Shown here in pieces: positions 1 through 64,000 of a stretch of 64,000 nt of DNA (positions within the stretch are counted from its first letter, which is position 1; each line of letters begins with the position of its first letter). Both the position numbers and the translations under genes were made by a program. The notes beneath the pieces are model-generated. The model did not search any database, was not told where the DNA came from, and saw nothing but the letters and a program-made list of their open reading frames with translations. The stretch comes from Trichoplax adhaerens. Its lineage: Eukaryota > Animalia > Placozoa. The DNA is taken from NCBI RefSeq assembly GCF_000150275.1, contig NW_002060943.1, positions 7,060,299-7,124,298 on the forward strand. Direction: 5' to 3'.

Positions 1-2429
1 ACCATGCAAATAAATGGGGATCGATCTGCAGTAACGGATGGGGAATAAAAGAAGCTAATGTTGCATGTCGGCAATTAAATTATGCGAAAGCAATGTCTGC
101 AAAAGGTATGCCTATCTATATGCAAAGAAGTAAATCATGTTTGATTTATAGCTAAAATCACAGCGAAATAACAGTTTAATTTTGTCTTCATCATTAATTT
201 ATCGTAGTTTGTGCTATGATTCCGTCCCATGTAACTCTCAACCAATGATCATACTTCCAATTTAGCTTCATTGCGACAAGAATCTCTATCAAAACAATCA
301 TGGACAGGATTTATAGCTTGTCAAGGCAATGAAATTGCCCTTTCTCAATGCGAGCAATCGCAGTGGATTATTTCTGCAGAATGTACAAGCCAAAGTAACG
401 CACGTATTTCATGCGAAGCGACTGCAGGTTAGAAATCTCGAATTAGCTGCATTCTAAAATTATAAGACTGTGACTAAATGCACTGATAATGGCCATGTGA
501 AGCCGTTCAACTAAATACATTTTTTACTCTTGCAGATAATCCCCTGAATTGTATCTTTGAGCATGGATTTTGCAGTTGGAAGCAACCTAAGAGAAACTAT
601 AAAATGGATTGGCTGTGGACGGATAGTAATCACACGCCATTAAACAAAAAGTTCTCAGGTACGTATGAAAATCAATCAAAGCTTAAAGATATTATTCTCC
701 ATCAATAAATTAACTTTATTAGCTTATTTACGTTAGTTAAGACAACTTGAACGTTTAGGAAGTAAATCTATAATTATAATATAGCTCAATAATAATAATT
801 CACCATACTATAAAAGCTTATCGATGTGCGCTACTCATATTTGATGGCTATTTCATAGCGTGACTGTTATTAGTCAATAAATTATCCATTGCAAAGGTTA
901 ATCGTAAAGTACCCTATAACGCAAATGCATGCTAACATTTTACAGATTCATTAAGATTTAAAATTATAATGACACTTAATCTGGCCTTCCTCTTAGGACC
1001 CCATATTTTTTTAAATACTTTATATGGCAATGATGAAGAAGAAGCAACTCTACGTAGTCCATTATTGATGACTCCTTATCAAAGAAATATAACTGTAAGT
1101 ATTTAACTATTATTTTCTTCTGCAGAATGGGTTACATTTTCATCGAATAGATAGTTTGAAATTGATAATAAATATCCTTATAACAGTTTTCTATTTGAAT
1201 TCATTGCTATCGCCTCAGGTTACCTTCAATTACCACCAATCTAAGATAATTAGTGGAGCATTCACGGTTGAAGTTTTTACAAAAGTATCTCAAAAAATAT
1301 GGCAAGCTGATAAGGCATCACCACCTGATGACATTCAGCAAAGGAAAGTCGTTTTTCAAGCCCCAGCAAAGCATTTCAACGTAAGATAGAAGCAATTTAT
1401 TATAAACAAATCAGATTTATCTCGCATGCTTCATAAGGCATGGCGATTATAATTGATTTCTCATCTAGTCAATATTGAATAGTACGATAATAAATGTAAT
1501 TTAAAGAAATAATATTTTAAAAATTAGGTACAATTCAAATTTGTAAAAGGACGAAAATCGACCGGTGTTATCAGTATGAACGCAATCAAGATCCAAGGAT
1601 GTCGTGAAGGTTAGTACATTATCTCAGCCATTAATCCGTATCGTATTCAATCCGCTGTGCTTTATGACTGTGCTGAGTCTTTATAGATTAACTTTCTGAT
1701 GTGATAGCCTTGATACTGGTTATGATTTAGAGGGAGCTATATATATATCGAAAACTGCAGGAAACTGGTATCTAACCAGTCTCTAAATGACGTTATTAAC
1801 CTTCGAAATTTACCTTTAAAGTTAATTTTAAAAATTTATGCCATATCAGTCTATTACATACCTTAAAATTATGTTTTCAGTCGCTCATACAATTGTACAA
1901 ATCTTAGATCAGTTTTCTTATATATAGTAATCAGAAAATTTCCATATATTGCATGCGAATAATAAATTATACTACATTCAAGATATTGGAGAATCTAGTA
2001 TCTGAATTTAATACAAAAAAACCTATGAAGTTATGCTATAACACAAACTGAATTTATCTCGGGTGCTCATTTCTTGATAATAGCTCTAAAATTTTGGAAT
2101 TATCCATCTACAAGTCTTTTTATATTATTAATCGATAATTGTTAATGGGTTTACTGGCAGCATCAAAAGCAATTTATGACGAAGACGATGACTCTATGGC
2201 AATGGGATTCGGATTAGCTGCGCTCGTCTTCGGCCCAGTCGTTATATTTTTTTGTTGGAGATATCATACAAAAAAACAGGACGAGATTGCTGAAGCTAAT
2301 ACTTTAGCAAAGCAAGTTCGCACACATCAAAATCAAACAAGCCAACCTAGGATCCGAAATAGTAGCGGTGGAAATCCTACTGAAAGTCTTCAGCCCCTAT
2401 GTAAGCGAAGAAAATCTAAAGTTAATTGA
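1..2429 (+). CDS. SRCR-MAM single-pass membrane receptor, 5'-truncated by the window edge (exons ~1-105, 266-427, 536-658, ~997-1093, 1219-1380, 1529-1609, 2161-2429)
   Basis: Spliced translation gives SRCR motifs (KWGSICSNGWGIKEANVACRQLNY; ACQGNEIALSQC), a MAM start (NCIFEHGFCSW) and ATLRSP, then a TM helix (MAMGFGLAALVFGPVVIFFCW) and basic tail; GT-AG boundaries visible. Confidence 0.85.
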
Positions 2430-4946
2430 AAATGATTGTTATTCATCGAGTTGAATTTTCTTTAATTTTTTACTCTAAATGATTTGGCAGTAAAGGAAAA
2501 TGCAACTGATGATCGACAGGATTATAGTACAAGTCAAAAGCTTCATGATTCAGAATCACAAGGTAGGCTACCCAAAATGTGTTTAATCGTTCGATAAAAA
2601 GACTTAGATTGTTTATTTTAGTATTATAGGATATAAAAGAAAATTTGTATATCATCTGACTCATAGTGTATCAGATTTCTTAACTACTCTGATACTTTAC
2701 TTGTAACTTTAAATCGCATAATACCTAGTAATCACAAGCGACAATTTAAATTTCTTCATAACTATGAGAAATATCTTATTTTATCATCTATAAAACGGAT
2801 TCAGAAGCATGTATCACGGAAGAGAGCAACAACAAAGTCTACAATGTTTGAAGTCTATCTAGCAAATTATCAATATATCAACATGTAAAGATTAGCAATA
2901 AATATGTAACCAGTTTGAGCCAAGTTTTTAAAATAGAATTCAGAGTGATAGCGTTAGATTACCTATAACAATAGCCATTTGCGGAAGGTAACCTGTGAAT
3001 TTGCTAAATTACTGGATACCTATGGCTATTTTAGACACATCTGAGATTGCATTAGATTTACTATGAATGATCTTCTTCTTATTTGAAAATAATGACAAGT
3101 AATATACGCTGCCTTTGTTACAGAAATTCTAAATTTGAGAAGATTATAAATAAGTTCTAGTAGATGACGAGTAAACATTCCTTTTGCCTACATAAAAGAA
3201 TTTCATTTGGCCTATCAATAAATATTGTTTAACCGAAGCCATTGTCAAGGTATAATTCCAAATTGAATTAAAATCACACGTTATTTTACATATTCTGTAT
3301 TTCTAAAAAATTATTACTGCTCATAAATAGTACCTAATATCAATTTGTTTTGAAATGGTTTATATTCAGTAGTAGATTATTTAAAAAGTTTATTAACTTA
3401 ACTTTTTAAGTTGATCTTTAAATAGATGATATCGAAAAAATTATCTCCTGGTTTATTTTCATCAAGTATTATGGGATAGTTGTTTTATATCAAGCATAAA
3501 TGTAATCATACATAATCATGTCATGAATTAAGTGTTTAAACACTACTAATTGCATCTCTAAGATTATCTTCATTGAATAGAGTAATAGATTGAATTTATG
3601 CTTATGTAACTTTTTCTCGGTTTCGCTTGAATAATTATTTATACTTAAATAATAAACAAGTATCATTTATGTAATTACAAACTGAAACTAAACCGAAATT
3701 TTGACAGATCTACTTACGAGCTACAAGTGCACTATAACCGCTTTATATCATATTACTATGCTATGATCTGTCGACCTGCTATGACTAAGAAACATGCCAT
3801 GTTTTCTTACATTTATATTAAAATCACACCACTTGACAAGTATTCTACGTATAATTCTCAGGCATGCCTATTAATACTCGCAATTATAGATGAAGCAGAT
3901 GAAGCTGCTAGCTGGCTAGAATAGTAGATCTTCGATGATATAGAGTATATATGTAATTCCTCCTACGCTAGGAAATAAATATTACAAATTATTAAAAGTT
4001 GAGACTCAATGGTAATTATGATACCTAATAAGTATTGCTCGTAATCCTGTTATAAAGTTTAATTACAAAATTATTGGTCTATAATACGGTTATATTGATA
4101 GCTTTAATTGGGTATAATGGCTGCAATTGATCAAAAATATTGTCGATTTTTAGCAAGGAGTCTATCAATCTACAGACATAACTATACGTCAGTGCCAATT
4201 TAGACCTAATATATAGTGTATGCCTCCAGTTCGAGATTTGATTGTTCTTTTCATCCCGCTAATATCTTAATAGCAAATACAGTATAACAGAGACATTGCA
4301 TGGGTATGTACTGCAAATATGTTTAACATTAGCGTACAAGTCTACCAACTATCTTATCGCTCTCCAGAATCGAACAAATTGAAATATATTCTAGGAATCT
4401 ACGTGGCCTATACTCAACTAAAACCGATCACAGTCATGTAATCAGGCTATTCACATTTTATTGAAATATCGAGATATTTTCATCAATTAATTATCATATG
4501 TGAAGCAATCAACCAGGGTGCACTCTATCACAATATTTTGATTAATAAAGAAGCTTCTTAGCTAGTTTGTTGTGTAGCGTATACTGTATAGGCAAGTCCT
4601 AATTCCATCTAAATATCGATACTACATTTATTACCGCTTGTACAGCTAACGGACCTCGATCTTGATATTTTATTACGTAATAAATACCGGTAATCGCCAG
4701 CGCTGCATATTCATGTATATACATTATACAAGCATATAGATACAAAATGACACTGTAAAATGACAAATTGCTTATCATTGTTTACTTTCTGATGAAATAT
4801 CAGGATATTAGCCCACATAAGATTACAGCCTGTTATTAATGACTGCATAATAGATACATTACTGTGGTCTTATGTCAATATGCCCAGTATGCTTTGAAAA
4901 AAGCGTACTGTAAAAATAAACAGTAATTTTTAAAAAGGGTTTCAAC

Positions 4947-39240: not shown

Positions 39241-40790
39241 TTATTTTTTATCATCGCCTTTGGGGGTTGATTCTTTGGAAATTGTAACATCAGTATTAAC
39301 ATCATCATTCTTCTTACGGCGAGCATTATTTAATTCAATAATAGCAGGTACAGATGTATAATTTAGGTATTCATCTAAAGTAAATTCGGTCGTATCAGCA
39401 ATAAAGCGCATAAATGGTCTTACGTCGCCATCATTCGCTTGTGACAGATATTGATAATAATGGAATCGATCGTGAACACGAATAATTATGGGAGGGAAAC
39501 CTGCTCGCATCAATATACAGTTCATGAATAATCGCGCAGTTCTGCCGTTTCCATCCACAAATGGATGAATATGAACTAATTTATAATGAGCTAAGGCTGC
39601 TAATTCAATTGGATGTAATTGCCTTGCTTCACTGGATTTCAACCAATTATCAAATTCTGTCATTTTGGCCGCTACTTGACCAGGAGGTGGTGGCACATGA
39701 TCGGCAATGTAGACTTGGCTATTACGATAGTTACCGGCTTCAAAAGGATCGCTAAAGCCGTAAACACGTCGATGAATTTGTAGGATATCTTGAACATCGA
39801 GTAGTCCAGCCTTATTGATTAATGTGGTATTGATATAACTAAGAGCTTCGTCCATACCGATAATTTCGTTATGTTCCATGACACTTTTACCACCAATAGC
39901 GATACGATTTTCGATAACAGCCCTAGTCATTTGTAAATTCATGGTATTGCCTTCAATTGCTACAGTATGGTAGACATGTTGATAATAACTTTCTCGTTTC
40001 ATCCTTATCAAGGCTGGATCAGTTAATGGAAGAGCATAAAATTTACTACGTTTAGCGGCTATACGTGCTAATCGATCGCGATCAATTTGTTGAACTAATG
40101 GTAGTGTTCTTTTTCGATTGGATAAAGCCAATTGATGATATGGATAATGAGATAATGCTGCTGTATAATAGTATTCAGCTTGAATGACATCTTCATGTTC
40201 TAAGAATTCACCATAATTATTTAATACATCAGGATGACGTGGCGCCATGCGTATAGCGTAGACGAATAATTTGGTTGCTTTCTTCTTATCGCCTTTCCTG
40301 GCTGATCGCCATGCTTGCTTGAGCGTATAAATAACTTCTTTGGTTAAATTTGTGGTTGCTGGTATTGCTATAGAGTTGATAGACAAAGCAGATGTATTGA
40401 TTAGAATTACTTGTTGCTTGTATACGTCAAAGGTATAGTCAAACTACGTGTCGGTATCCAATTTTTGTAATCAATAGCACACTAAGTGGATAACCAACGT
40501 AAAATTGAACTCAATAGTATGACATGCTTCAGTCATGAGTAATACTCACCTGGTGATTTGTTCAGCTGGGATTTTCCTTGATGTTTGCCTTGTAAAAAAC
40601 CAGACATACAATGACTGATACCATCCTTGTTAGGCATTTTAGAACAGGAAAAATGTTCAAAATCCGCCGATTTTCTGGTGTTGTCATAGACGAAGACATT
40701 ATATAGTAATATGATGATGGAACAAAGTAATAAATGGCGCAACATCATTGTAGATGATGACCTGTCACTAGTATGAAGTGTTGTAGCCAT
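39241..40790 (-). CDS. FICD: FICD/HYPE AMPylase; exon 1 40790-40550 (TM anchor), exon 2 ~40410-39241
   Basis: Fic motif HPFVDGNGRTAR, autoinhibitory TVAIEGN, TPR region (PRHPDVLNNYGEFLE), GDVRPFMRFIA; exon 1 has a hydrophobic helix and a gtgagt donor. The exact exon-2 acceptor is unresolved. Confidence 0.96.
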
Positions 40791-51478: not shown

Positions 51479-53997
51479 CTCTGAAAAAGAGCAGGAATTA
51501 TTCTAAAACTGATATGTTACCATTTTTAATTCATCCATTTTCATCTAATACTTATAAAATTTTAATAAAATTTCTAAGCTAAGATTACCTTACATAAATG
51601 GATATAGCAATGGATATCACTATAACTGAAGTATGGTGTTTGCTTTTTAGACTTTAACTTATGTGCTTAAGTGGACCATGGCGTCAGTGTAGTAACTCCC
51701 CGAGTGAACGATAGTTTTTATCGTTTTTTCCAGATAGACTTTCATGCACCAAATTTAATTCATTAATCTGGGTACTTAGCCATATTTATCCACTTTGTAA
51801 TCATTAATAACTCTTACCGACACGTTACATTCTAAGTTGGCTTAAGCTAACGTATATCATATAATTAAAGTTCGCAACGTATGCAAACTGTAATAGTTAC
51901 CTATATTGGTATTTATTATAAACAATTTTAGACCGTAGAATATTCATTTGATTTGTTCTAATTTTAAAATTTTTTACTATCAATATATACTATTTTCATT
52001 TTAGTATGCCATTCATTGTTTCAAATCTTGATATCAGCTAAAAGTCAATGAAAGCTTTACATATTTTATAAGTTAAGTAGCAATTAAAAAAAATGAAATG
52101 AAATTAAAATGTCATTCATCCTTATTTTCTTAGCATTGCGTTCTTATTTTAGATCTTGTATCTAAATAACGTCAAATGTGTACACTTTTTCTTCTCTGTT
52201 TTGAATAAACACGTGTTAACTATTATGATTGTACAGTATAAGTTTTCTGTTCGCAAGATCGTTACTTTAATAAAAAATGAAATGACCTTGTAATAAATTT
52301 CTATTAAATTATAGTTTGACCTGAAAAGGGTTTAATGAAACAATTAGTAATAATAACTGTATGGTTCAAGCAATAGAACGTAATTATGAAACAGTTAATT
52401 TCAGCAGATAACAATCCATCTACGGTCTTGCAATGTTAGTGCATTGATGAGTATTCGTATAATCCACATACTGTACGTACAATGTTATCTTACATGTTTG
52501 GCTCTCCTTTTTAATACGATTATATTAAATACGGTATCTGATAGTGCTATCTATAAACCCTTTATATATATACTCGTACGTAATTATGTAAAGATAATTT
52601 TCGAAATCGATAGTATTATTTGCCTTATTTTCATGTTATTTCATATCAACCGACGACGAGATGCTATTCACGAATAATAATAAATAAAATTCTAAATTTT
52701 ACAACAAGCAACTACAAAATTAATTTGCAATATAGTCACATGAAAAGAATTAATTGAAATTATCCAACTTTATGAATATCAATAACTTTACTAAGAAGTT
52801 AACTGCTTCAAGTTAGCGTATAAGTTTATATACGATGCAGCATATGTATACTTCTTAAAATATTTGTGTCAGCAAATAAAATTTCATAATTTGTTACTAG
52901 CTGACGGTATCTCAGCCATTTCCGTTATTTTTCAATGATGAAAAAATTAAATGTGTACTGGCTTATACTGTACTATTTAACATTATAGCTTAATACCAAT
53001 TGCTGTTATTAATAGCTGAGATATTTCACGTATATACAAATTATACAGCATTTACATATCATAATTTATGATAGCATCTGCTAATCAAAAATCTTGATTT
53101 ATACAATAGGCATAGCAAATATAGTCTAGTAACAGATTGATTAAATTAAATTATTAGTATCTACCGTATACGTATGTCACACTACATAGCTTCGTTTTAT
53201 AGCTTATTCTTGAGATTAGAATTGCATGCCTAAGCTATGGATATTGCATATATAAGTTGAAGAATTACTACTCTACAAATCAAAGGCTAATTTAACAGCT
53301 ACAATTAGAATTAGTATCGTTCAAAGAGATTTAGGATTAAAATGTAGAATCAAAATACTTCTTTTGCCTGATATAATATTTCATAGTTAATGAGTAGCCT
53401 CATGAATAATTAGTCAGGAACCATGATAGTTTATACTGTCACCGTAATATTGTACTTAGATTTTGAAGATTAGGATTCGGTTAGAGTCAGGATTGATTGC
53501 CTTGTCTATGCAAGTGACTACGACTTGATAATCGAACAAGTTTAGATAATTTTACATCTTCTTATATGGTACTTTATTGTGAATAAAAATCAGATAAAAT
53601 GAAATAGTTACATATGTTCAGCGTACATTTTTACAAGGATAAATGCGTATCTTTATAATAAATTAATAACGCTCTATTTTTGGCTTTCTAATCTATTCAT
53701 ATATGAACGTATACATAATTTATTTTCGGATGATTAATGCATATGCATGTATATTGTTTTAATAAAATAATGATGTTAAATATATAAATGAATCGTATTA
53801 ACGACGTGATATATTCCGTTTTAGAAAATAAGATAACTTATAACATGACCGAATACACAAATGGTTTTACTGCATATAGAATATACGTGATTATTGTATG
53901 ATTGCTATACGCATCTACGTTAGATTAATAAATGAACGATAAAAGACTATAAACCAATTACTAACATAATAGCTTCTCTATTAGTAAATAGGGCAAC

Positions 53998-54687
53998 TTA
54001 TAACATGACTGAATGCATCACTGGCTTTACTCCTACCCAGCGTTTCTGAATATTGTGAAAATTAGTTTTTTGCACTAATTTCAAAGATTGCGCAAATTCG
54101 AAGTGAACAATAATAGGATTATCGCCAAACATCTTATGTTTTTCTCCACCCTCAGTGACCTCCATAACCGGTCCAAATTGCTCAAAATACTTCTTAACAA
54201 CATCATGGCTGATTCCATGAGCACCAGAAACAGCAATACGATTAAAAGCAGTCTTAGCATCTTTATCACGTTTGGGTACTGTATATAAGCTAAGTGATCT
54301 TTTCGCAATTCGATGCTTGGATTCAGCGGCTAGAAATTTCTTAGCAGCTTTAGTTTCATGAAATTGTACAGTAACAGCAATACGCCTTCTACCTGTAATA
54401 TTATCAATGGTTAATTTCCTTCTACTCATACTGGCAACATCGCCGTACTGGCGGAAATAGGTGATTAAATCAGCTTCAGTTGAATCATTAGATAAACCCG
54501 AGACTAAAATAGTACGGCCATCATCATCATCATCTTTCATTTCTTCTACATGACTCCATCGACGTAAATGCGGATCATATTCTTCAGCATAGGTCTGAGG
54601 GCGATCATGTTGATTCCCTTCATCGCTTTCTTCATCGCTTACCGAAGGTAATCGACTATTTATTCGGATTTTTTTGCGTTCTTGTTT
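53998..54687 (-). CDS. Intronless tandem-RRM reading frame (hnRNP A1/Musashi-type, degenerate RNP motifs), probably the true end of the adhesion GPCR
   Basis: RRM1 TILVSGL..STEADLITYFRQYGDV and RRM2 VKKYFEQFGPV...FHNIQKRWVGVK. The frame is stop-free from 54687, 147 nt upstream of the first ATG (54540), and overlaps the end of the 737-aa ORF in the -1 frame. Confidence 0.8.
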   Translation of the reverse strand, partial: KQERKKIRINSRLPSVSDEESDEGNQHDRPQTYAEEYDPHLRRWSHVEEMKDDDDDGRTILVSGLSNDSTEADLITYFRQYGDVASMSRRKLTIDNITGRRRIAVTVQFHETKAAKKFLAAESKHRIAKRSLSLYTVPKRDKDAKTAFNRIAVSGAHGISHDVVKKYFEQFGPVMEVTEGGEKHKMFGDNPIIVHFEFAQSLKLVQKTNFHNIQKRWVGVKPVMHSVML

Positions 54688-57600
54688 TTATCTATATTTT
54701 CATCTGTTCCATGTTGTTGTTTATTCACCTTATTTTGTACCTTTGCAGGTGGATCTACATGAACAGAGATCTTAGAGTTATTCGATGCTAGAAAGACTTC
54801 ATCATCATAGTCATCTTGTGATTCTGCGCTTGCATGACTGGAATTATCATGTGCTGGAAAACCTTTATTGGCATGGATAGTAGAGCGCTGTTTGTTCATA
54901 CCTGCATTGGCCGAAGTAGACATATTGGGATTTATATACATGCTTACTTGACTCTTTTTATTGGATTCTGAGGGTTTCAATTCCCCTTGTTGATTTCTCT
55001 TTTCCTTATTTGAATTCATAGAGTTCCGACTTGCCTTATTATCTTGTAGAACTGGAGGTTTTGATCTCTGACTAGATGAATCTTTTTTAACATTAACATC
55101 AGTTGAAGAAGTCGATTTATCATGAATTGAGCTTTTCTTTATGGCTGGTGGGATCGAATGATGAGAATCATGATGAGAGATTCCATTATTTATTTGATTT
55201 ATTGGTTGATGTGTTAATTTCATGCTTGCTTTTTTCAACGGTTTTATAGTATCATTATCGGAGATTTGTTTTGGTGAATTCGGTTGACCTCGATGACCGC
55301 TTAATGAATCTTGGATCGTATTCGACAAATTGCGATGAGACATTGTCGGCCCGTCATCAATCGAAATATGATCCGATCGATTAGCTATCATTGCATTAGT
55401 TGTACTAGCTATAATTTCTTTTTGGTTGTTAGATGAAACATCAGCCTGTTTTTGAATATCAGTCTGATTCTTTTTTTCAGGCATACCAGCTGAGCTTGAT
55501 AGCTTAACTTGCTGCTTTGTACCTATATTACGTGATATTTCAGCTTGATCATGAACATTCGCCGATCTACTGTTACCTTCTTTCTTAACACTAGAATTAT
55601 TTTTTTCCTGATTTCGATACAGCTGAGTTGATTCTTTCTCACTGGATCTACTATGCATGGCCTGCTGATTATACAGAACCTTGGTTTGAGCATCTTGACT
55701 AATTGCTTCGTTCTCAGGCATGCTGGAATTCTGTCCATCTAAATTGCTATTATAGCGATGAGTTATTTCTTGCTGATCTGATGTATCGTGGACAGACTGC
55801 TGCTTCTGCATAGGTTTGATTATCGCCTGGCTAGCAATGATCTCATTTGTAGCAGAATTTTGCCTTTCTAATGGATTACTACAATGATCGACTGACTTTT
55901 GTTGATTTATATCTTGTCTTTCTAACTGATAATTGAGAGAATTAGATATTTGATTCACTTTAGCAATGCCAGAATTTTGTCGTTCTGTTAGTTGATTCTG
56001 TTGATTATTTGACTCATGTATATTTGATTCGTCGTGTATAGATTGTTGTTTACGTAAAGTTTTGACTGTAGCACCATGAATTATTCCACTTTCTTCAATG
56101 TGAGTCTGATCTCTTGCCAATGGACTTTGATGAGAACTCTTTTCTCCTTTATAGGACGAATCATGTCTTAACAGCTGATTATGTATGGTATTAGTCATAA
56201 CAGTGTTGGTAGATGGAGAATTATTATGGGTATATTGAGCCGAGTTGGCTGGATTAGAAATGCTGTCTTCATCAATTGGATGGCTGTACGATCTGGTAGT
56301 ATCATCATATGAAGGTGAATTTATTTGAGCATCTGGTAGATAGTCATATTGTGGAAGTTTCCTTTGACTAGTTTCTGTCAAAGTTGATGTATTGACAGTA
56401 GGTTGTTGATGCTCTACAGTTACTACACGATCTCCTCTATCTGATAGGATAGATGAAGAAACTACAGATGCAGAAACTAACGAATTATCAGCATTTTGTT
56501 GTATGGCTTCTTTTACCTCTGGTTTTGGACTATTTTGATCAGAGTTTCTTCTCTCAATTTCTTCCCTTGTCTCTATGGGATCTTCATTCTCTGCTAAAGC
56601 AATCGTGGAAATTAAAGTAGCAGCAGCTATCGATTCCTCGAGATTTCGCTTTGCAATCTCATCCGCTGTTGCTTTTGGACTAGGTTGACCATGATGTTTC
56701 AAACTACTTCTTCCAGGGGTAGCATTAGGACGAGGGTTTGATTTTACAGAATAAAATCGAGTAAGGGATGGACTGCGACCGACATTACGATACTGACTAG
56801 AAATATCACTATTTTTATCATCTTTTACCGCTTCTTTATCATTAGTTGCTCCCTTTTCATGAATTGTAGGCATGTAAGCAAAGTGGACTTTCTTAGAATT
56901 GATTCTATTGATGTTATTACTATAACTTGGCTTAACATCTTGCTGGTCAAAATTAAAATTTTCTTGGCCGATATCTTGTTGGTCAGTATTGGAATCTTCT
57001 TGCCCGATATGACTTTCGTGAATAACTGTAATATCATTAATTAAGTTTTTATGGTCCTTACTATCTCCCCACCTAATGAGTAATATTGGATAGGTAATGT
57101 TAATATATCTAGTTGTCGATTAGAGTAGATAACAAATAATACCATAAAGTTATTCTACCGATATATCATCTTCTATTCGATCACACGTTCTATTAAAACA
57201 GATTACTAACCTGTTGACATTATTATAACTATTTTGGCTACTATTATCGGCTGAATAAGCAGAATCTCCATCGCTATACCTTTCGTCTGAAGAGCTTGAT
57301 TATAGAATTAAAGATCAATAATACGCATGATATTAACATTAAAGATTTTTTTCTTGTTATTATAAAATTATAATTAACCTTAATCACTCAGTGCTGTAAT
57401 AGCATCGTAGTTATCGATTAATATCGTACAAGTTATCAACATTAAGAGTTTATTCTTCTTATTATAAAATATTAATTAGCATGAATCACTTAATATTATA
57501 ATAGCATTAAAGATATTGATTAATAATATACTAGTTATTAGCACGAAAGGTTTTAAGCTTCTTGTTATTGTAAAACTATGATTAGCTTTAATCACTTAAA

Positions 57601-60600
57601 TATAGTTATAGTATTTAAGAGTTAATTACTTTATAGTTGATTAAATCGTAAATAAATGAAAATAAACTATCGAATTAACGAATCATAACAGCTTTCATTA
57701 ACATAACCAATAAATTATAAGAGCGTCTTAGTTTAGATGGCCTTATAACGGTTAATTTATTATCCACAATTTGATAAAATTAGAAGTTGCAGTATGTTTT
57801 AAATACAGCCTTCTTTAGCTCATGTCAACTCTTACCTATGATTGTAGCGACCTGCACCCCACCTGGAAGTATTATTTCTAGGAATGCCTCTTGCACTGGA
57901 TGCAGACATAGCAACAACTTTATTGCCATGACTAAATAGAGATCGAGCGACAATAGGTTAGCTTTCTTAATGTGTATTCACGATAAAACTATTCACCATA
58001 GTAAAAGTTTACGCCTTATGTTAGAAAAGTAGATCAATTAACTGAAATTTCTATGTAAATGGCAAGTTAAGCCGTGATAAATAAATACTAAGATACTTCA
58101 CTTTCAATGATATATTATAGTAGTCAGTGAGATATAAATGCAGTATGAATTAGAAATTACAGTGATCTTTCCAGTCTTGTTACAACTCTTCCAATGCTCC
58201 TATGTCTTCTAAGATGGATTCGTATCTATAAAATCAAGAATGTTCTTAGATACTTTCCTGTAAGGGCTGCTATTTTATTTTTAGTCTGAAACATATATTA
58301 ATACTATCGGCATTCCTACAATAAATCCAATCACATCCCTTATAAAAGATGTGAGGTTCAATTTATTGCAAAATAGATTACGACTAATACTACAGTAATG
58401 ATTCAAACGTACGAGTAAATTACCTGTAGCTCAAGCACTATATGCAGAACTTATAAAAAGTATTAGATTCAATTTATTGCAGAATATATTAGGCCTATGC
58501 ATATAACATTAAAAACATAAATACCCGTGGATCAAGAACTACGTGCAGGATAAATACCAGTATTCCCTAATTGCAAGTAAAATGGAAAGTTATAAACCGA
58601 GGTCAAATAAGTAAAATATGTAAGGAACATTATTACATCTACTAAGCACCAACTCTACACCTTTGCAATACCTGCGATGCAGTTATAACAGCAAAAATAA
58701 TAGCTGCTATATCAGTCGTAGCTCCACTGAATGCTAACGGTCCACCAAGCCACCCAATTCCAAGTAATGGCAATAAGACTGCAAGAGCTCTGAGCGATGC
58801 TCTTAGGTTTGTTAAAAGTGGACATAACAATTAATTAATCTCTTTCAATCTCCTCAATAATATTAGAAATGGTTCTTTAAAAGCTACATCTACTGAAGTA
58901 GTCAATGCATCTCTTTATTGGTAAATAGGAAAATAAAATTTTACTTACTTGACTTTATTTTTCTCGTTCTTAGTTGCGAGAAAGGAGTCCAGAGTAAGTA
59001 GTGATTTCAAAGTTAAGCTCATGTAAATGATAATAATCTGTGATAAAGTATCAAATAAAATTGCATTTATTTGGCGAATTAAGCATACTATGATCTTGGA
59101 AGAATGTTCATTTCCAATGCAAATTATAAGCAGCGATCGATAACGTTCCGATTCTTACTTACCATTATAATTACTACCCCTGGAGCAGCAAGTGCAAATA
59201 TACTATAATTACCATCGGTATTCATCCAGCAACTAGATTTATTTTGTGCAAATGAATGCATAGAATCATTGTATGGAGTGCAAAAAATAGCAATACTACA
59301 ACATATTTATTACTTTGATATGCGTATTATTATAAATCAACATGCCATCTTATGCCAGATAAAAAAAGTAAAATTCTCAGCCTACTTTGCATTTGTCGCA
59401 CCATCACCATAAGCTGAATCTCCTAGAATCGCCATAGTAGTACCAACTACAACAAATGGAACGACTGCAATTGGTCAAAAAATGAAAATAATGATTTAGA
59501 ATACTTTTTATCTTGAAAAAGTGTGCCAGTAATAGTTACTAGAAAATCAATCATTACTTGAAATCAATAAGGCTATTGTACAAAAAGAAATATTTAAATC
59601 CAAACATAATTTAGGACTTAGATGTTACTATTAGCGGAAAATTCGTCGATGTGAACTTGAAAACAGTAAGTAGTTTTAAGATTTTTAATTTATTCTATAC
59701 AAACGCGCTGCAGTAGCAATTGCTAATAGGCAAAAAATTGTTTCTACTTAATTCTTACTGATTAGTAAATACTGCTATTAAACTGAAAATATACCAAAGT
59801 TGACACGGAATGTTAATAATATCTGATAATGAACAAATCAATTTGCTCTTTCTAGAATTTATAACATTTGAAGAGCCATCTTTGACATGCTAATTTACGT
59901 TTGGACAAATATACTTACGCCCTGTAATAGCGATACAGATTTTAAATTATAACCACAATTAAGCAATCATTAGCAAGCTAACTAGCTATTCAGTAGATCA
60001 TTTTAGTAATATGCCGACGATGATTTTAAAATGCCAAGTGATTTATCTAAGGCCTATCAGCATTACTTACCTATGTTGGCTAGAAAATACCAATGAACCT
60101 TAATTGGTTTCAATGTTAGTTTTTTCAAAGTAATGTAGATGATGATACTTTCAGTTAGCATCCAACAAAAAGTGTAAATAACAAAGTAATGTAAAATTGC
60201 CCCAATAATAACACATCCAACCTAAATTTTTTACAGGAAACAAATATTGAATTACTGCTATAATTAACGGCAAGTATGTAGTTTATTTTTATGTAGAGAA
60301 ATTTACCCTACTATGACGAACTAATTCCTTATCAATTCCTATCACCATCATAGTATTGAGTAGTAAAAGTGATATAGCTATGCTAGTATGGGATATGATA
60401 ATACCAATTCTAAATGTTTTCCTAATGGTAGATTGAAAAAGTTATAAATATAATGAAATAAATAATTTTTAAGTTGAAAAGCAATGGATCAATTTATTTT
60501 TCATACAAATATGTTAAAAATTTTAATAAGAAAAGTTATAACTACTTACTTCCATAATATTGAATAGCATATTAACGTGATTACAAGCCATGTAATTGAT

Positions 60601-63600
60601 ATTGCACTCCCAATATAGCTCGAGATTCTAACGCTTCGAACGGAATTAATTACCTATAGGGATGAATATATACTTCAGCTAGGAAAGGAAACACTTGTTA
60701 CAATCAAACTTTTTACAGTCTTAAATTACTTTTTAATATCGTTAATCATTTAAATATCAATTAACTTACTGGTAAAGGCTGCAATAATACCGAAAAACTA
60801 GTTAAATGATCACATTGGCAGACCACATGACTTTGATTATATTCGGAAGCATTGCAACCCGATGGAGACCAAATATTATCAACACTATCGTAAAATGATA
60901 CATGATATAATTAGAAAATCTGAGTATTTTCACATTACTAACTTAAGTGAAGGTATATAATCTGTTCTAGTTAATATCTTTCACTATAACAGAAATTAAT
61001 AGTTTTGAATAAGAGGAAATAATGAAAATGTCTTTTCAAGTCGTATAGAATTACCTTGCACTAGTGTTCCAATAAACGCAGATAGGAGAACCTTGATTGC
61101 TAGCACTAAGCTGATTATTCTATTATAAACCCATTAGAAATTAATTAAAATATATTTTCGAAAGTAATAACTCGAATGAGTAAATCGTCGCTGAAGTAAA
61201 CCTACCAGTTTAAAGGTAATGGTAACAGGCAATTCGAGGTCGTTTGACGGACTACCACTGATAGTTGCAGATACAACTTTTGCTACAGTATTCTGTCTCC
61301 ATGTTGAACTATCGTTAGAAAATTTCATTAATTCTATTAGCTACGAAATTAATTTACTGTAATGAGATCATCCTAGCTAACAAACAAAAATATTGTCAAA
61401 TATCGAGTAATAATTAAAAATTTAATCCAATAACCTCGTAACTAGCTGGCTGAGGATTATTCCCAGCGTTTTAAACTGATACGTTGTTACTTTAACCTTG
61501 TTACCTGATACAGTTTAATCCAACAAAACAGTTCGAAAAAGTAATTTTAATTAGTTATAACCGTAAATTTAATATATCTGAAATTTAGAAATTGAAAAAA
61601 GTAAGATATTTCTATCATCTCTCATTACACAATACCTATGAAAATTGTTTCAGGTAACTGAATGCTGGTATCAGTATAGGAATTTGTAAAAGAATCGGTC
61701 AGATTTTCTACTACATTAGAATTTCCATCTGCATCATTGGCAACGAAATTAATAGTAAGTACCTTGTCATATCTCCTATTAATCGAGTCTATACTGACAT
61801 TTAATTAGTATATGAGTACGTAAATTATATAATGTAAGAAATAGAATTTAATTATATCAGTTGCTATCATTAGCCTTACGCTGCTTGTCAATTATGGAGG
61901 TAAATAGAAAATATTTATATTTTATATGAGCTAACTAACTAACCAACATTTAATGTCTTGGTGGTAATCGTTTCACTGCTTTTATCCAGTAGATCAAAGC
62001 AAAATGTATTCAAGTTGTCAATAACTTGGCGTAAATGTTTCTGAAATGGAAGTGATACAGTGAAATATTTCATTAGTATTAGTTACATCCAATATCATAC
62101 CTAGAACACTTTGATCTAATTTATTAGAAGTAATACTGGGCGGATATCTGCTATCGAATGTTTATATATCATTCATTTTAAACCATAATTCAGTATTTAC
62201 AACAGTAACTACAAACTGTAGCGAAATTTCCAAATTATCTGATATCGTTAAGTTCCTATTTAATAAGCGTTATCTGCTACAGGTATCGATATATTAGACG
62301 CTAAGACATTGTAAGGGAAATACGAATATATTCGTTTTTATACGGTACATATTACGATTTATTCTGCAGATACACATTTTATAATTTGATCTATTGAAAA
62401 TATCCAAGAAATCTGCCTTGAGCAAAAGCTACTTATTTGCCATATAGTTAGATCTGTATGAATTTTAAGCTAGACATTTTTAATTTAGTCTATACCACAA
62501 GTGAAACCGAGTAGAGTCTTTCTATATGCTCATTTGCTAATATTTTACAAGTTTTAACAGATTCAATATTCTGGACCGGATATGAAGTAAATTTCTAATC
62601 AGAAGTTGTATCAAGACTTAATCTCATTCCTTCGGTTTACGTTAACTACATCTTACTATGGCTGTTCGTTTCCAAGATTGAATATTGGACTCCGCTAGGA
62701 TATTACTGGTGGTTTGAAAGAAATTCTAGAAAGAATAATTATAGTTGCATATATTAAATATAGAATTTAATATTATAGAATGATTGTATGTTCGATTACT
62801 TTGGATTACTGACTTAAAATGAGCTAGATAGAATTTAATGATTGTAATCACTTATAACTGCTATTGAGCAGAGTTTTCAAAGTTCTATAATGATAAAATT
62901 TCCGATATTTTTAATAATTGCTACAAAATGAACTAAAATAGGATTTTGACAGCTGAATATTATAATATTACATCTTCAATTAATGGTAGCTGAGCAGATG
63001 GTGTCCCATTCTTAATTCTTTTAATAGCAATATCCATAATAATATTACTCCGTATCAAGTTGCCAGGTTTGACGTTAGTTATACTCCCATTGTTCATTTG
63101 AGCTGTAATAATATTCAGTTGCCCTAATAAATTCATCGTTGTGGAAACGCCTGGCGGAGAGTTAGCTGACTATAAAAAGAAAGTTTTACCATGATAAAGG
63201 CATTAATTCGAAAGATAAATGATCATCTATTGAGATTCAAGAGCAAATATTATTAAATGAAGATAATTACCGCAAATACAGTATATAATACACCTTTCAA
63301 ATATCAAATTTGTACAAGTTAAGCTTAATGATGTAGTAATAATTGATTTAAATCATAGTTTACAATCAAATAAAAAGAATTATACATACATGTATTAACT
63401 TTAACAAATATAAGTAGCACAGAGTTTGAATCAAATTTTCAAATGCCATTTCTTAGTAACTTGGAATATGGTGAATAATAGACAATATATTGAAAAATAA
63501 TTTTAACGTTCTACATCTTTTGCATGGCTTCGTAAGTTAACTTGCCTGAAATTGCAACTTCCAAAATTCTGGAGACGCACAATTATCGATGTTAGCCTCT

Positions 63601-64000
63601 TGCCATATTCCGCTACTACTACAATAGCGGGTAGCTATCCCTAATGAAGAACAAAGCTGAAAATTTCGGTATGAATGATTATGAATTAAACTAATTTAAG
63701 CTGCCGATATAAAGGGAGGCATATCTCTATTCAAATTTGTATAGTAGCCGTTCCAATTGTAGAAACAGTCTGTAATAAATATCTCAGTTGCAAAGATTAC
63801 TTCAGGATAGAGTATCTCATCATTTTATCTCGCGGAGACGCATAGTAGATAGAAAAATAATTTCACATTGGTATCTTTTGTTTATAATTCACGACGAAAT
63901 GATGGATAAATACAAATTATAGCTATGAAATGTAGACTAAAAGACTGAAGATATTACAGGCTATTAGTCTAAAGTTTAAATTTATTAATTAACTTTAAGT
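54660..64000 (-). CDS. Adhesion GPCR (HormR-GAIN/GPS-7TM, ADGRD/ADGRL-like) with a ~880-aa low-complexity cytoplasmic tail; 5' end probably outside the window
   Basis: HormR exon 63641-63546 (ATRYCSSSGIWQEANIDNCAS); GAIN (KVVSATI...LPVTITFK); GPS (WSPSGC...VVCQCDHLTSFSVLLQ, ~60775-60880); 7TM (GCVIIGAILHYFVIYTFCWMLTESI; RALAVLLPLLGIGWLGG; QGILVFILHVVLD). Exons 58225-58161, 57931-57836 and 57294-57211 splice in phase into a terminal exon from 57072 that contains the 737-aa ORF. Confidence 0.92.
57331..57620. repeat. Intronic AT-rich tandem repeat, ~3 diverged copies, period ~102-106 bp
   Basis: ttctt.ttatt.taaaa...aatcact...atag motif with aatcact at 57382, 57484 and 57590. Confidence 0.8.

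Follow-up and report, generated by a model that had tools for sequence, protein, structure and literature searches.

The cytoplasmic tails of adhesion (class B2) G protein-coupled receptors (GPCRs) are poorly understood. On the outer side of the membrane, an ectodomain of Ig, HRM and GAIN/GPS modules ahead of seven transmembrane (7TM) helices is what we take to be an ADGRA-like layout within this class. GPCRs that carry a globular C-terminal domain have been described, such as GPCR-PIPK and GPR155 with its DEP domain, and RRM is not mentioned in a survey of C-terminal GPCR domains (PMC12716839). Here, we analysed a 64,000-nt stretch of DNA (the window) of the placozoan Trichoplax adhaerens, in which the tail of a predicted adhesion GPCR runs, with a -1 offset in the reference sequence, into an open reading frame (ORF) for a pair of RNA recognition motifs (RRMs). 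Very probably this is one gene that is read in one frame in most of the material, coding for a predicted adhesion GPCR that ends in an RRM pair, and the offset is a one-base insertion or deletion (indel). The receptor shares with GPCR-PIPK and GPR155 the fusion of a 7TM core to a cytoplasmic domain, whereas the receptor class and the domain differ. With the adhesion GPCRs it has in common the GPS, the 7tm_2 helices, an HRM-like exon, a long disordered tail and Ig_2 exons upstream, but, unlike those described, it ends in RRM folds. Literature searches found no published description of an adhesion GPCR with an RRM, and the architecture is undescribed in the literature found; programmed frameshifting, which a first-pass annotation of the window had proposed for the offset, is not supported.

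The window (C1414:7060299-7124298) lies on a contig of 13.26 Mb, and the genome searched comprises 105.6 Mb in 1414 contigs. Unless another sequence is named, coordinates are positions in the 64,000-nt window, and the gene runs on its minus strand. Four public sequencing runs (X1, X4, X5 and X10), one from each of four studies, supplied contigs that were aligned to positions 53800-59799; such contigs show no transcript starts and no allele ratios, and they drop minor variants. X1 behaves as DNA, since exons and introns are covered evenly and joints are absent, while X4, X5 and X10 are spliced RNA. The features of the gene that these contigs define are the following.

57209-59466, minus strand, span of eight exons fixed by RNA, which encode TM4-TM7 and the proximal tail
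59386-59466, 59163-59232, 58949-59037 and 58671-58801, minus strand, RNA-fixed exons 1 to 4, from joints in RNA contigs
58525-58565, 58161-58225, 57836-57931 and 57209-57294, minus strand, RNA-fixed exons 5 to 8, from joints in RNA contigs
57071-57208, 57295-57835, 57932-58160 and 58226-58524, minus strand, introns seen in RNA as joints in contigs
58566-58670, 58802-58948, 59038-59162 and 59233-59385, minus strand, introns seen in RNA as joints in contigs
53998-57070, minus strand, coding part of the terminal exon (disordered tail, linker, RRM pair and stop), in unbroken RNA contigs, nearest joint 57070/57209
54684-54685, minus strand, indel site, where the reference and X4 are short by one base and X1, X5 and X10 have an extra base
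54669-54675, minus strand, tract of seven A (A7, A AAA AAA), unchanged in four of four runs and not kept in the orthologue
54660-54662, minus strand, tail-frame stop TAA, which acts as a stop in the reference/X4 allele only, the +1 alleles passing it in another frame

Every intron joint reads CT..AC on the plus strand, that is, GT..AG on the minus strand. The stretch 53800-57070, which contains the RRM ORF, the A7 tract, both stops and the whole tail, was spanned by a single contig in X4 and in X5 and by five overlapping contigs in X10, and the contigs of these three runs that reach 57070 connect to the eight upstream exons. Because spliced contigs run from the 7TM exons through the RRM ORF, the 7TM receptor and the RRM ORF share one mRNA. 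After the exons had been joined computationally, those for TM4-TM7 and the terminal exon shared one open frame. The first-pass annotation had concluded that a 7TM receptor ends in RRM folds, and this was borne out as one transcript and one predicted protein in most datasets.

In the reference, the tail ORF measures 819 codons from stop to stop (57119-54663) and its frame ends in GCA AAA AAA TCC GAA TAA. The RRM frame is open from 54687, following a TAA at 54690-54688, to the TAA at 53998-54000; this 229-codon piece begins KQERKKIRINSRLPSVSDEE, and within it a 180-aa ORF starts at ATG 54540. The A7-bearing tail end, the -1 frame that is open from 54687 to 53998 and leads into two RRMs, and the missing intergenic space between tail and RRM frame were thus all read correctly in the first-pass annotation. 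The runs differ at a position 9-10 nt upstream of A7. On the plus strand, X1 and X10 have an additional C behind 54684, and X5 has an additional T there together with 54685 T>C, so that on the minus strand GAT AAA AAC AAG is changed to GAT AAA AAG CAA (X1, X10) or GAT AAA AGA CAA (X5). With either +1 allele, the terminal exon is one frame of 1040 codons, counted from the stop-to-stop limit at 57119, and its sole stop is the one at 53998. A one-base homopolymer error or allele had been among the suggestions made for the offset. The single-base indel is borne out, but its site is behind 54684 and not in the homopolymer: the DNA-like and RNA contigs of four of four runs have A7, and no A8 was found in them.

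Over 54036-55577, the extra base is the only difference between X1 and the reference (1 gap, no substituted letter). This identity, like all the remaining evidence in favour of the in-frame state, would fit a mere mistake in the reference assembly, without any truncating allele behind it. Against such an error stands X4, a spliced contig that aligns at reference length, without a gap in 3271 nt. X4 differs from the reference at six SNPs, its background including 54731, 54775, 54792 and 54938, and therefore represents independent data and not the reference itself. We thus consider an assembly error unlikely. Since the independent spliced contig of X4 has it, the frameshifted state of the reference is probably a real, truncating allele, and in X4 this deletion allele is expressed and spliced. 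The deletion allele would truncate the receptor just ahead of the RRM module, with a loss of only the last ~226 residues, and its mRNA would be expected to escape nonsense-mediated decay because the premature stop is in the last exon.

Within 53998-56400, other differences between the runs were few in the RRM region, with one SNP across the four runs (54394, ACA>ACT, which we read as synonymous). About 10 SNPs were found in the tail, among them 54731 AAG>CAG, read as Lys>Gln. X1 is short by 4 bases at 59134, within the intron 59038-59162, an intronic indel polymorphism.

The in-frame state is also that of the orthologue. The protein collections contain a single close relative, P0001, a fragment of 263 aa from a metagenome contig of 1175 nt (L002). 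In P0001/L002, the acidic tail end (…DDDDDVFLAEDNS…) continues in one frame into GKQERKRIRINSRLPSVSD and the first RRM, and the alignment of the window DNA to L002 places a single-base gap in the reference exactly at the indel column. The parts of the terminal exon that are compared in this way are the following.

54514-54687, minus strand, conserved linker (KQERKKIRINSRLPSVSD ... RRWSHVEEMK), dN/dS 0.09 to the orthologue P0001/L002, where tail and linker share one frame
54280-54513, minus strand, RRM fold 1, aa 59-136 of the 229-aa piece, from Pfam, AlphaFold2 and Foldseek
54022-54240, minus strand, RRM fold 2, aa 150-222, from AlphaFold2 and Foldseek

With dS at about 1.2, the linker has a dN/dS of 0.09, the RRMs have one of 0.15, and the tail, which aligns poorly, has one of 0.51. 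These ratios indicate that the linker and the RRMs are under purifying selection, the strength of which points to a functional RRM module. Given the in-frame orthologue and the dN/dS of 0.09, the region in which a frameshift or an intron had been placed as a switch is a well-conserved coding linker.

The signals on which the frameshift proposal was based were compared with chance and with the orthologue. Besides the A7 tract, they are the following.

54634-54656, minus strand, small hairpin, not significant and not conserved
54595-54728, minus strand, candidate GT..AG intron of 134 nt, unused in assembled transcripts

According to the proposal, A AAA AAA would be a site of programmed -1 ribosomal frameshifting or of transcriptional slippage, through which a reference-type allele would give short and RRM-bearing isoforms. 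The heptamer at 54675-54669 indeed fits the slippery pattern X XXY YYZ in phase, and either a -1 shift or a transcript with A8 would lead into the RRM frame; a stop follows two codons on, and the hairpin folds as it had been described. Yet such heptamers occur at the chance rate: the A-rich tail ORF contains 6 XXXYYYZ heptamers in phase, and shuffling of its codons gives 5.35 +/- 2.3. The usual spacer between a heptamer and its stimulatory structure is 5-9 nt. Here, the hairpin starts 12-13 nt downstream, and the 79 nt after the heptamer have a minimum free energy of -15.9 kcal/mol (z = -0.93), 35 of 200 shuffles folding equally well. In the orthologue the frame is uninterrupted, AAAGAGA stands in the position of A7, and the hairpin arm GGTAA of the window is AGTCA. 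Moreover, A7 is unchanged throughout the runs, and no shift is needed in three of the four. Programmed frameshifting as the design of the locus was therefore rejected on account of chance-level signals and non-conservation. The reference-type allele is transcribed in X4, where slippage at a low level could partly rescue it, and trace slippage on the deletion allele may be compatible with the contig data; as an explanation for the locus, slippage is very unlikely. A programmed shift would have been a rare case of cellular -1 frameshifting in an animal, in place of which an ordinary one-base indel is found.

A splice that would join the tail to the RRM frame had been put forward as a third route. 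The proposed intron of 134 nt (54728-54595) has its GT at 54728-54727, its AG at 54596-54595 and a fitting phase, and a minor isoform of this kind could stay hidden in contigs. Nevertheless, the joint 54729/54594 was not seen in the contigs of X4, X5 and X10, though all eight neighbouring introns appear as joints, so that the dominant transcripts keep this stretch (removed in 0 of 3 spliced RNA contig sets). The interior of the candidate intron holds the linker, which aligns to the orthologue as conserved coding sequence, in frame and with the low dN/dS given above. The candidate was rejected on account of the absent RNA joint and the conserved coding interior, and we regard it as extremely unlikely. 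The elements of the intron that had been noted are thus present, while its use is not observed.

The RRM ORF could also be a separate gene that abuts the receptor downstream and starts at ATG 54540. The ATG-initiated ORF of 180 aa exists, and contigs are blind to transcript starts. Against a separate gene, there is zero intergenic space, and the 57 codons ahead of ATG 54540 are conserved as protein and, in the orthologue as in the +1 alleles, follow on from the tail without a break. Furthermore, two paralogous loci hold the RRM pair inside the tail ORF. A separate gene is accordingly a very improbable reading, and an exact look-up of the 180-aa ORF found no record.

These two loci (L007 and L008) show the same build as the window gene, in that 7tm_2/GPS exons precede a terminal ORF made up of a disordered tail and a C-terminal, collinear RRM pair. 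L007 lies at ~11.14 Mb on C1414, 4.0 Mb further along the contig of the window, and has 7tm_2 exons and a terminal ORF of 357 codons, which reads through a disordered tail into two RRMs without a change of frame (RRM_1 E 9e-13). L008, which was found by genome search (C1408:1729500-1739499, minus strand, ~1.73 Mb), has a GPS, TM exons and a terminal ORF of 458 codons with a disordered tail and, at its end, the RRM pair, again in one frame. At both loci the receptor-RRM linkage is predicted from the genomic layout. The three RRM pairs align collinearly with 20-24% identity. When the genome was searched with a profile made from them, only these three loci matched strongly (E 4e-81, 3e-78 and 6e-78), and the next hit was at 1e-5. 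The window copy differs from the other two by the one-base deletion in the reference and by fewer RNP aromatics: L007 and L008 keep one RNP1 aromatic, and L008 additionally has the RNP2 Tyr (KIYVGGL). Since the reference is in frame at both L007 and L008, the offset in the window is a lesion and not a mechanism. These results indicate that the receptor-RRM architecture is real and conserved, and that three genes of T. adhaerens, which branched off early among animals, have it in common.

The receptor identity of the window gene comes from its upstream exons, which were searched with Pfam exon by exon and are the following.

63540-63695, minus strand, HRM-like exon, a weak match (E 9e-4, 20 bits, under the Pfam cut-off of 26.2)
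60764-60910, minus strand, GPS motif (PF01825, E 5.4e-13, 49.7 bits, cut-off 22.5), reading CxC..HLTxF
60549-60653, 60292-60441 and 60066-60221, minus strand, TM1-TM3 exons, with borders set by open frames only

Pfam and the open frames placed the GPS directly ahead of the TM1 exon, and open frames at 61137-61804 are found upstream of the GPS, where the GAIN region would fall. The TM3 exon (60066-60221) matches 7tm_2 (PF00002, E 9.6e-8, 32 bits, cut-off 20.6), and weaker 7tm_2 matches were obtained for the TM5 and TM6-7 exons, with the order preserved. Because these upstream exons carry a GPS, pieces of 7tm_2 and a weak HRM match, the gene is classed by its predicted domains as an adhesion GPCR, in agreement with the first reading of the window. 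Beyond the window end, Pfam found Ig_2/I-set exons at L003:1621-2004 and 2243-2530 (minus strand, E 6e-11 and 9e-6), which lie upstream on the same strand and probably form the ectodomain of the window receptor. An ectodomain of leucine-rich repeats (LRR) and Ig domains was considered as well and dropped, since a Pfam search of the exons that lie upstream, outside the window, detected no LRR.

The two RRMs are well defined as folds. RRM fold 1 is matched by Pfam RRM_1 (PF00076) at aa 60-131 with 34.4 bits against a cut-off of 20.7, while RRM fold 2 has no Pfam match despite a confident predicted RRM fold. The AlphaFold2 model of the 229-aa piece, for which an alignment with tandem-RRM proteins was used, has two beta-alpha-beta-beta-alpha-beta folds (aa 59-136 and 150-222) with pLDDT mostly >90. 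The top Foldseek matches were the tandem RRMs of hnRNP A2B1/A1 and of PUF60 (E 9e-12). The ESM Atlas gave generic RRM clusters only, with scores <0.9 and including the GRSF1/RBM12 type, which we take as a lead only. By sequence and by structure, the pair is matched best by tandem RRMs of the hnRNP A/B, hnRNP D and Musashi type, which likewise have two RRM folds and a short linker. However, identity to them is only 18-29%, and the window pair terminates a membrane receptor, whereas hnRNP and Musashi pairs sit in soluble ribonucleoprotein (RNP) proteins.

The pair also departs from these proteins in its RNP motifs, the conserved aromatic residues of which stack on RNA bases. RNP2 and the RNP1 position read ILVSGL and RRIAVTVQF in RRM 1, and IAVSGA and NPIIVHFEF in RRM 2. 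In the alignment to hnRNP-type tandem RRMs, the aromatics of RNP1 (positions 3 and 5) and RNP2 (position 2) are absent from both RRMs, Phe/Tyr being replaced by Leu, Ala, Thr, Ile or Val. The orthologue likewise has no aromatics in the three motifs that it covers (RNP1 and RNP2 of RRM1, RNP2 of RRM2), L002 stopping short of the RNP1 of RRM2. Because the canonical RNP aromatics are missing in the window copy, non-canonical RNA binding or protein binding would be likelier than classical stacking on single-stranded RNA.

Taken as one gene in one frame, the receptor would consist of the HRM-like exon, the GPS, the 7TM core and a disordered cytoplasmic tail of ~900 residues, which would pass through the conserved basic/acidic linker into the C-terminal RRM pair; the base missing at 54684/54685 of the reference would account for the -1 offset, with slippage and splicing unneeded. 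Our best guess is that the RRM pair might serve as a cytoplasmic effector or docking module, or as a non-canonical RNA-binding module, at the end of a flexible tail. The linker carries an acidic/serine stretch and a basic stretch that resembles a nuclear localisation signal (KKQERKKIR), and the latter would fit nuclear import of a released fragment. More tentatively, and with considerable doubt, we suggest that a small placozoan subfamily of adhesion GPCRs (the three loci) could couple the sensing of cell contact directly to the handling of RNA or RNPs at the membrane, or else to an intracellular fragment that is released and carried by the conserved basic linker, and that a natural deletion allele would remove only the RRM module. 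If this holds, receptor forms with and without RRMs would be available in living cultures as a ready-made loss-of-function comparison. A folded, selectable module in an adhesion GPCR tail is in itself a concrete handle on signalling beyond G proteins. At the level of annotation, the reference state would lead automated pipelines to truncate the gene or to invent an intron.

Several observations weigh against reading the locus as a single receptor-RRM gene. The reference and X4 are frameshifted, so that a short product without RRMs is also encoded in some of the material, and contigs leave allele ratios, heterozygosity and rare A8 transcripts unreadable. L002 has an in-frame TGA at the RNP2 Leu codon (VSG-L-S; L002:840-850), after which the conserved frame continues. 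This TGA may reflect an error in the contig, a nonsense allele or another, independent lesion just ahead of the RRM module or within it, and the module may be dispensable or polymorphic in the lineage of the orthologue. Finally, the collections searched hold no annotated full-length protein from the own or the sister genome. In the word-index protein search, the 229-aa RRM piece matched the fragment P0001 alone and the 819-aa tail had no match. An exhaustive search of representatives found no close relative beyond P0001, generic multi-RRM proteins of 28% identity coming next, and 7tm_2 was absent from all long protein matches checked. The collections may omit T. adhaerens' own proteins, and these null results do not bear on public gene models. 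With these points taken into account, the single gene with a one-base indel is still the reading that we prefer.

Some further features were noted at and around the locus. A neighbouring adhesion GPCR stands in tandem with the window receptor, its TM6-7 exon matching 7tm_2 at L003:9339-9494 (minus strand, E 5e-5), ~9.4 kb past the window end, and the genome search found no RRM near it. At the 3' end of the terminal exon there is a direct repeat of 75 nt with 73% identity (53797-53871 and 53957-54031), in which the final ~34 coding bases, together with the stop and the beginning of the 3' untranslated region (UTR), recur 160 nt downstream within the UTR. Elsewhere in the window, an ORF of 381 codons (39241-40386, minus strand) contains a Fic motif, HPFVDGNGRTAR, and its predicted product resembles a FICD/HYPE-like AMPylase.

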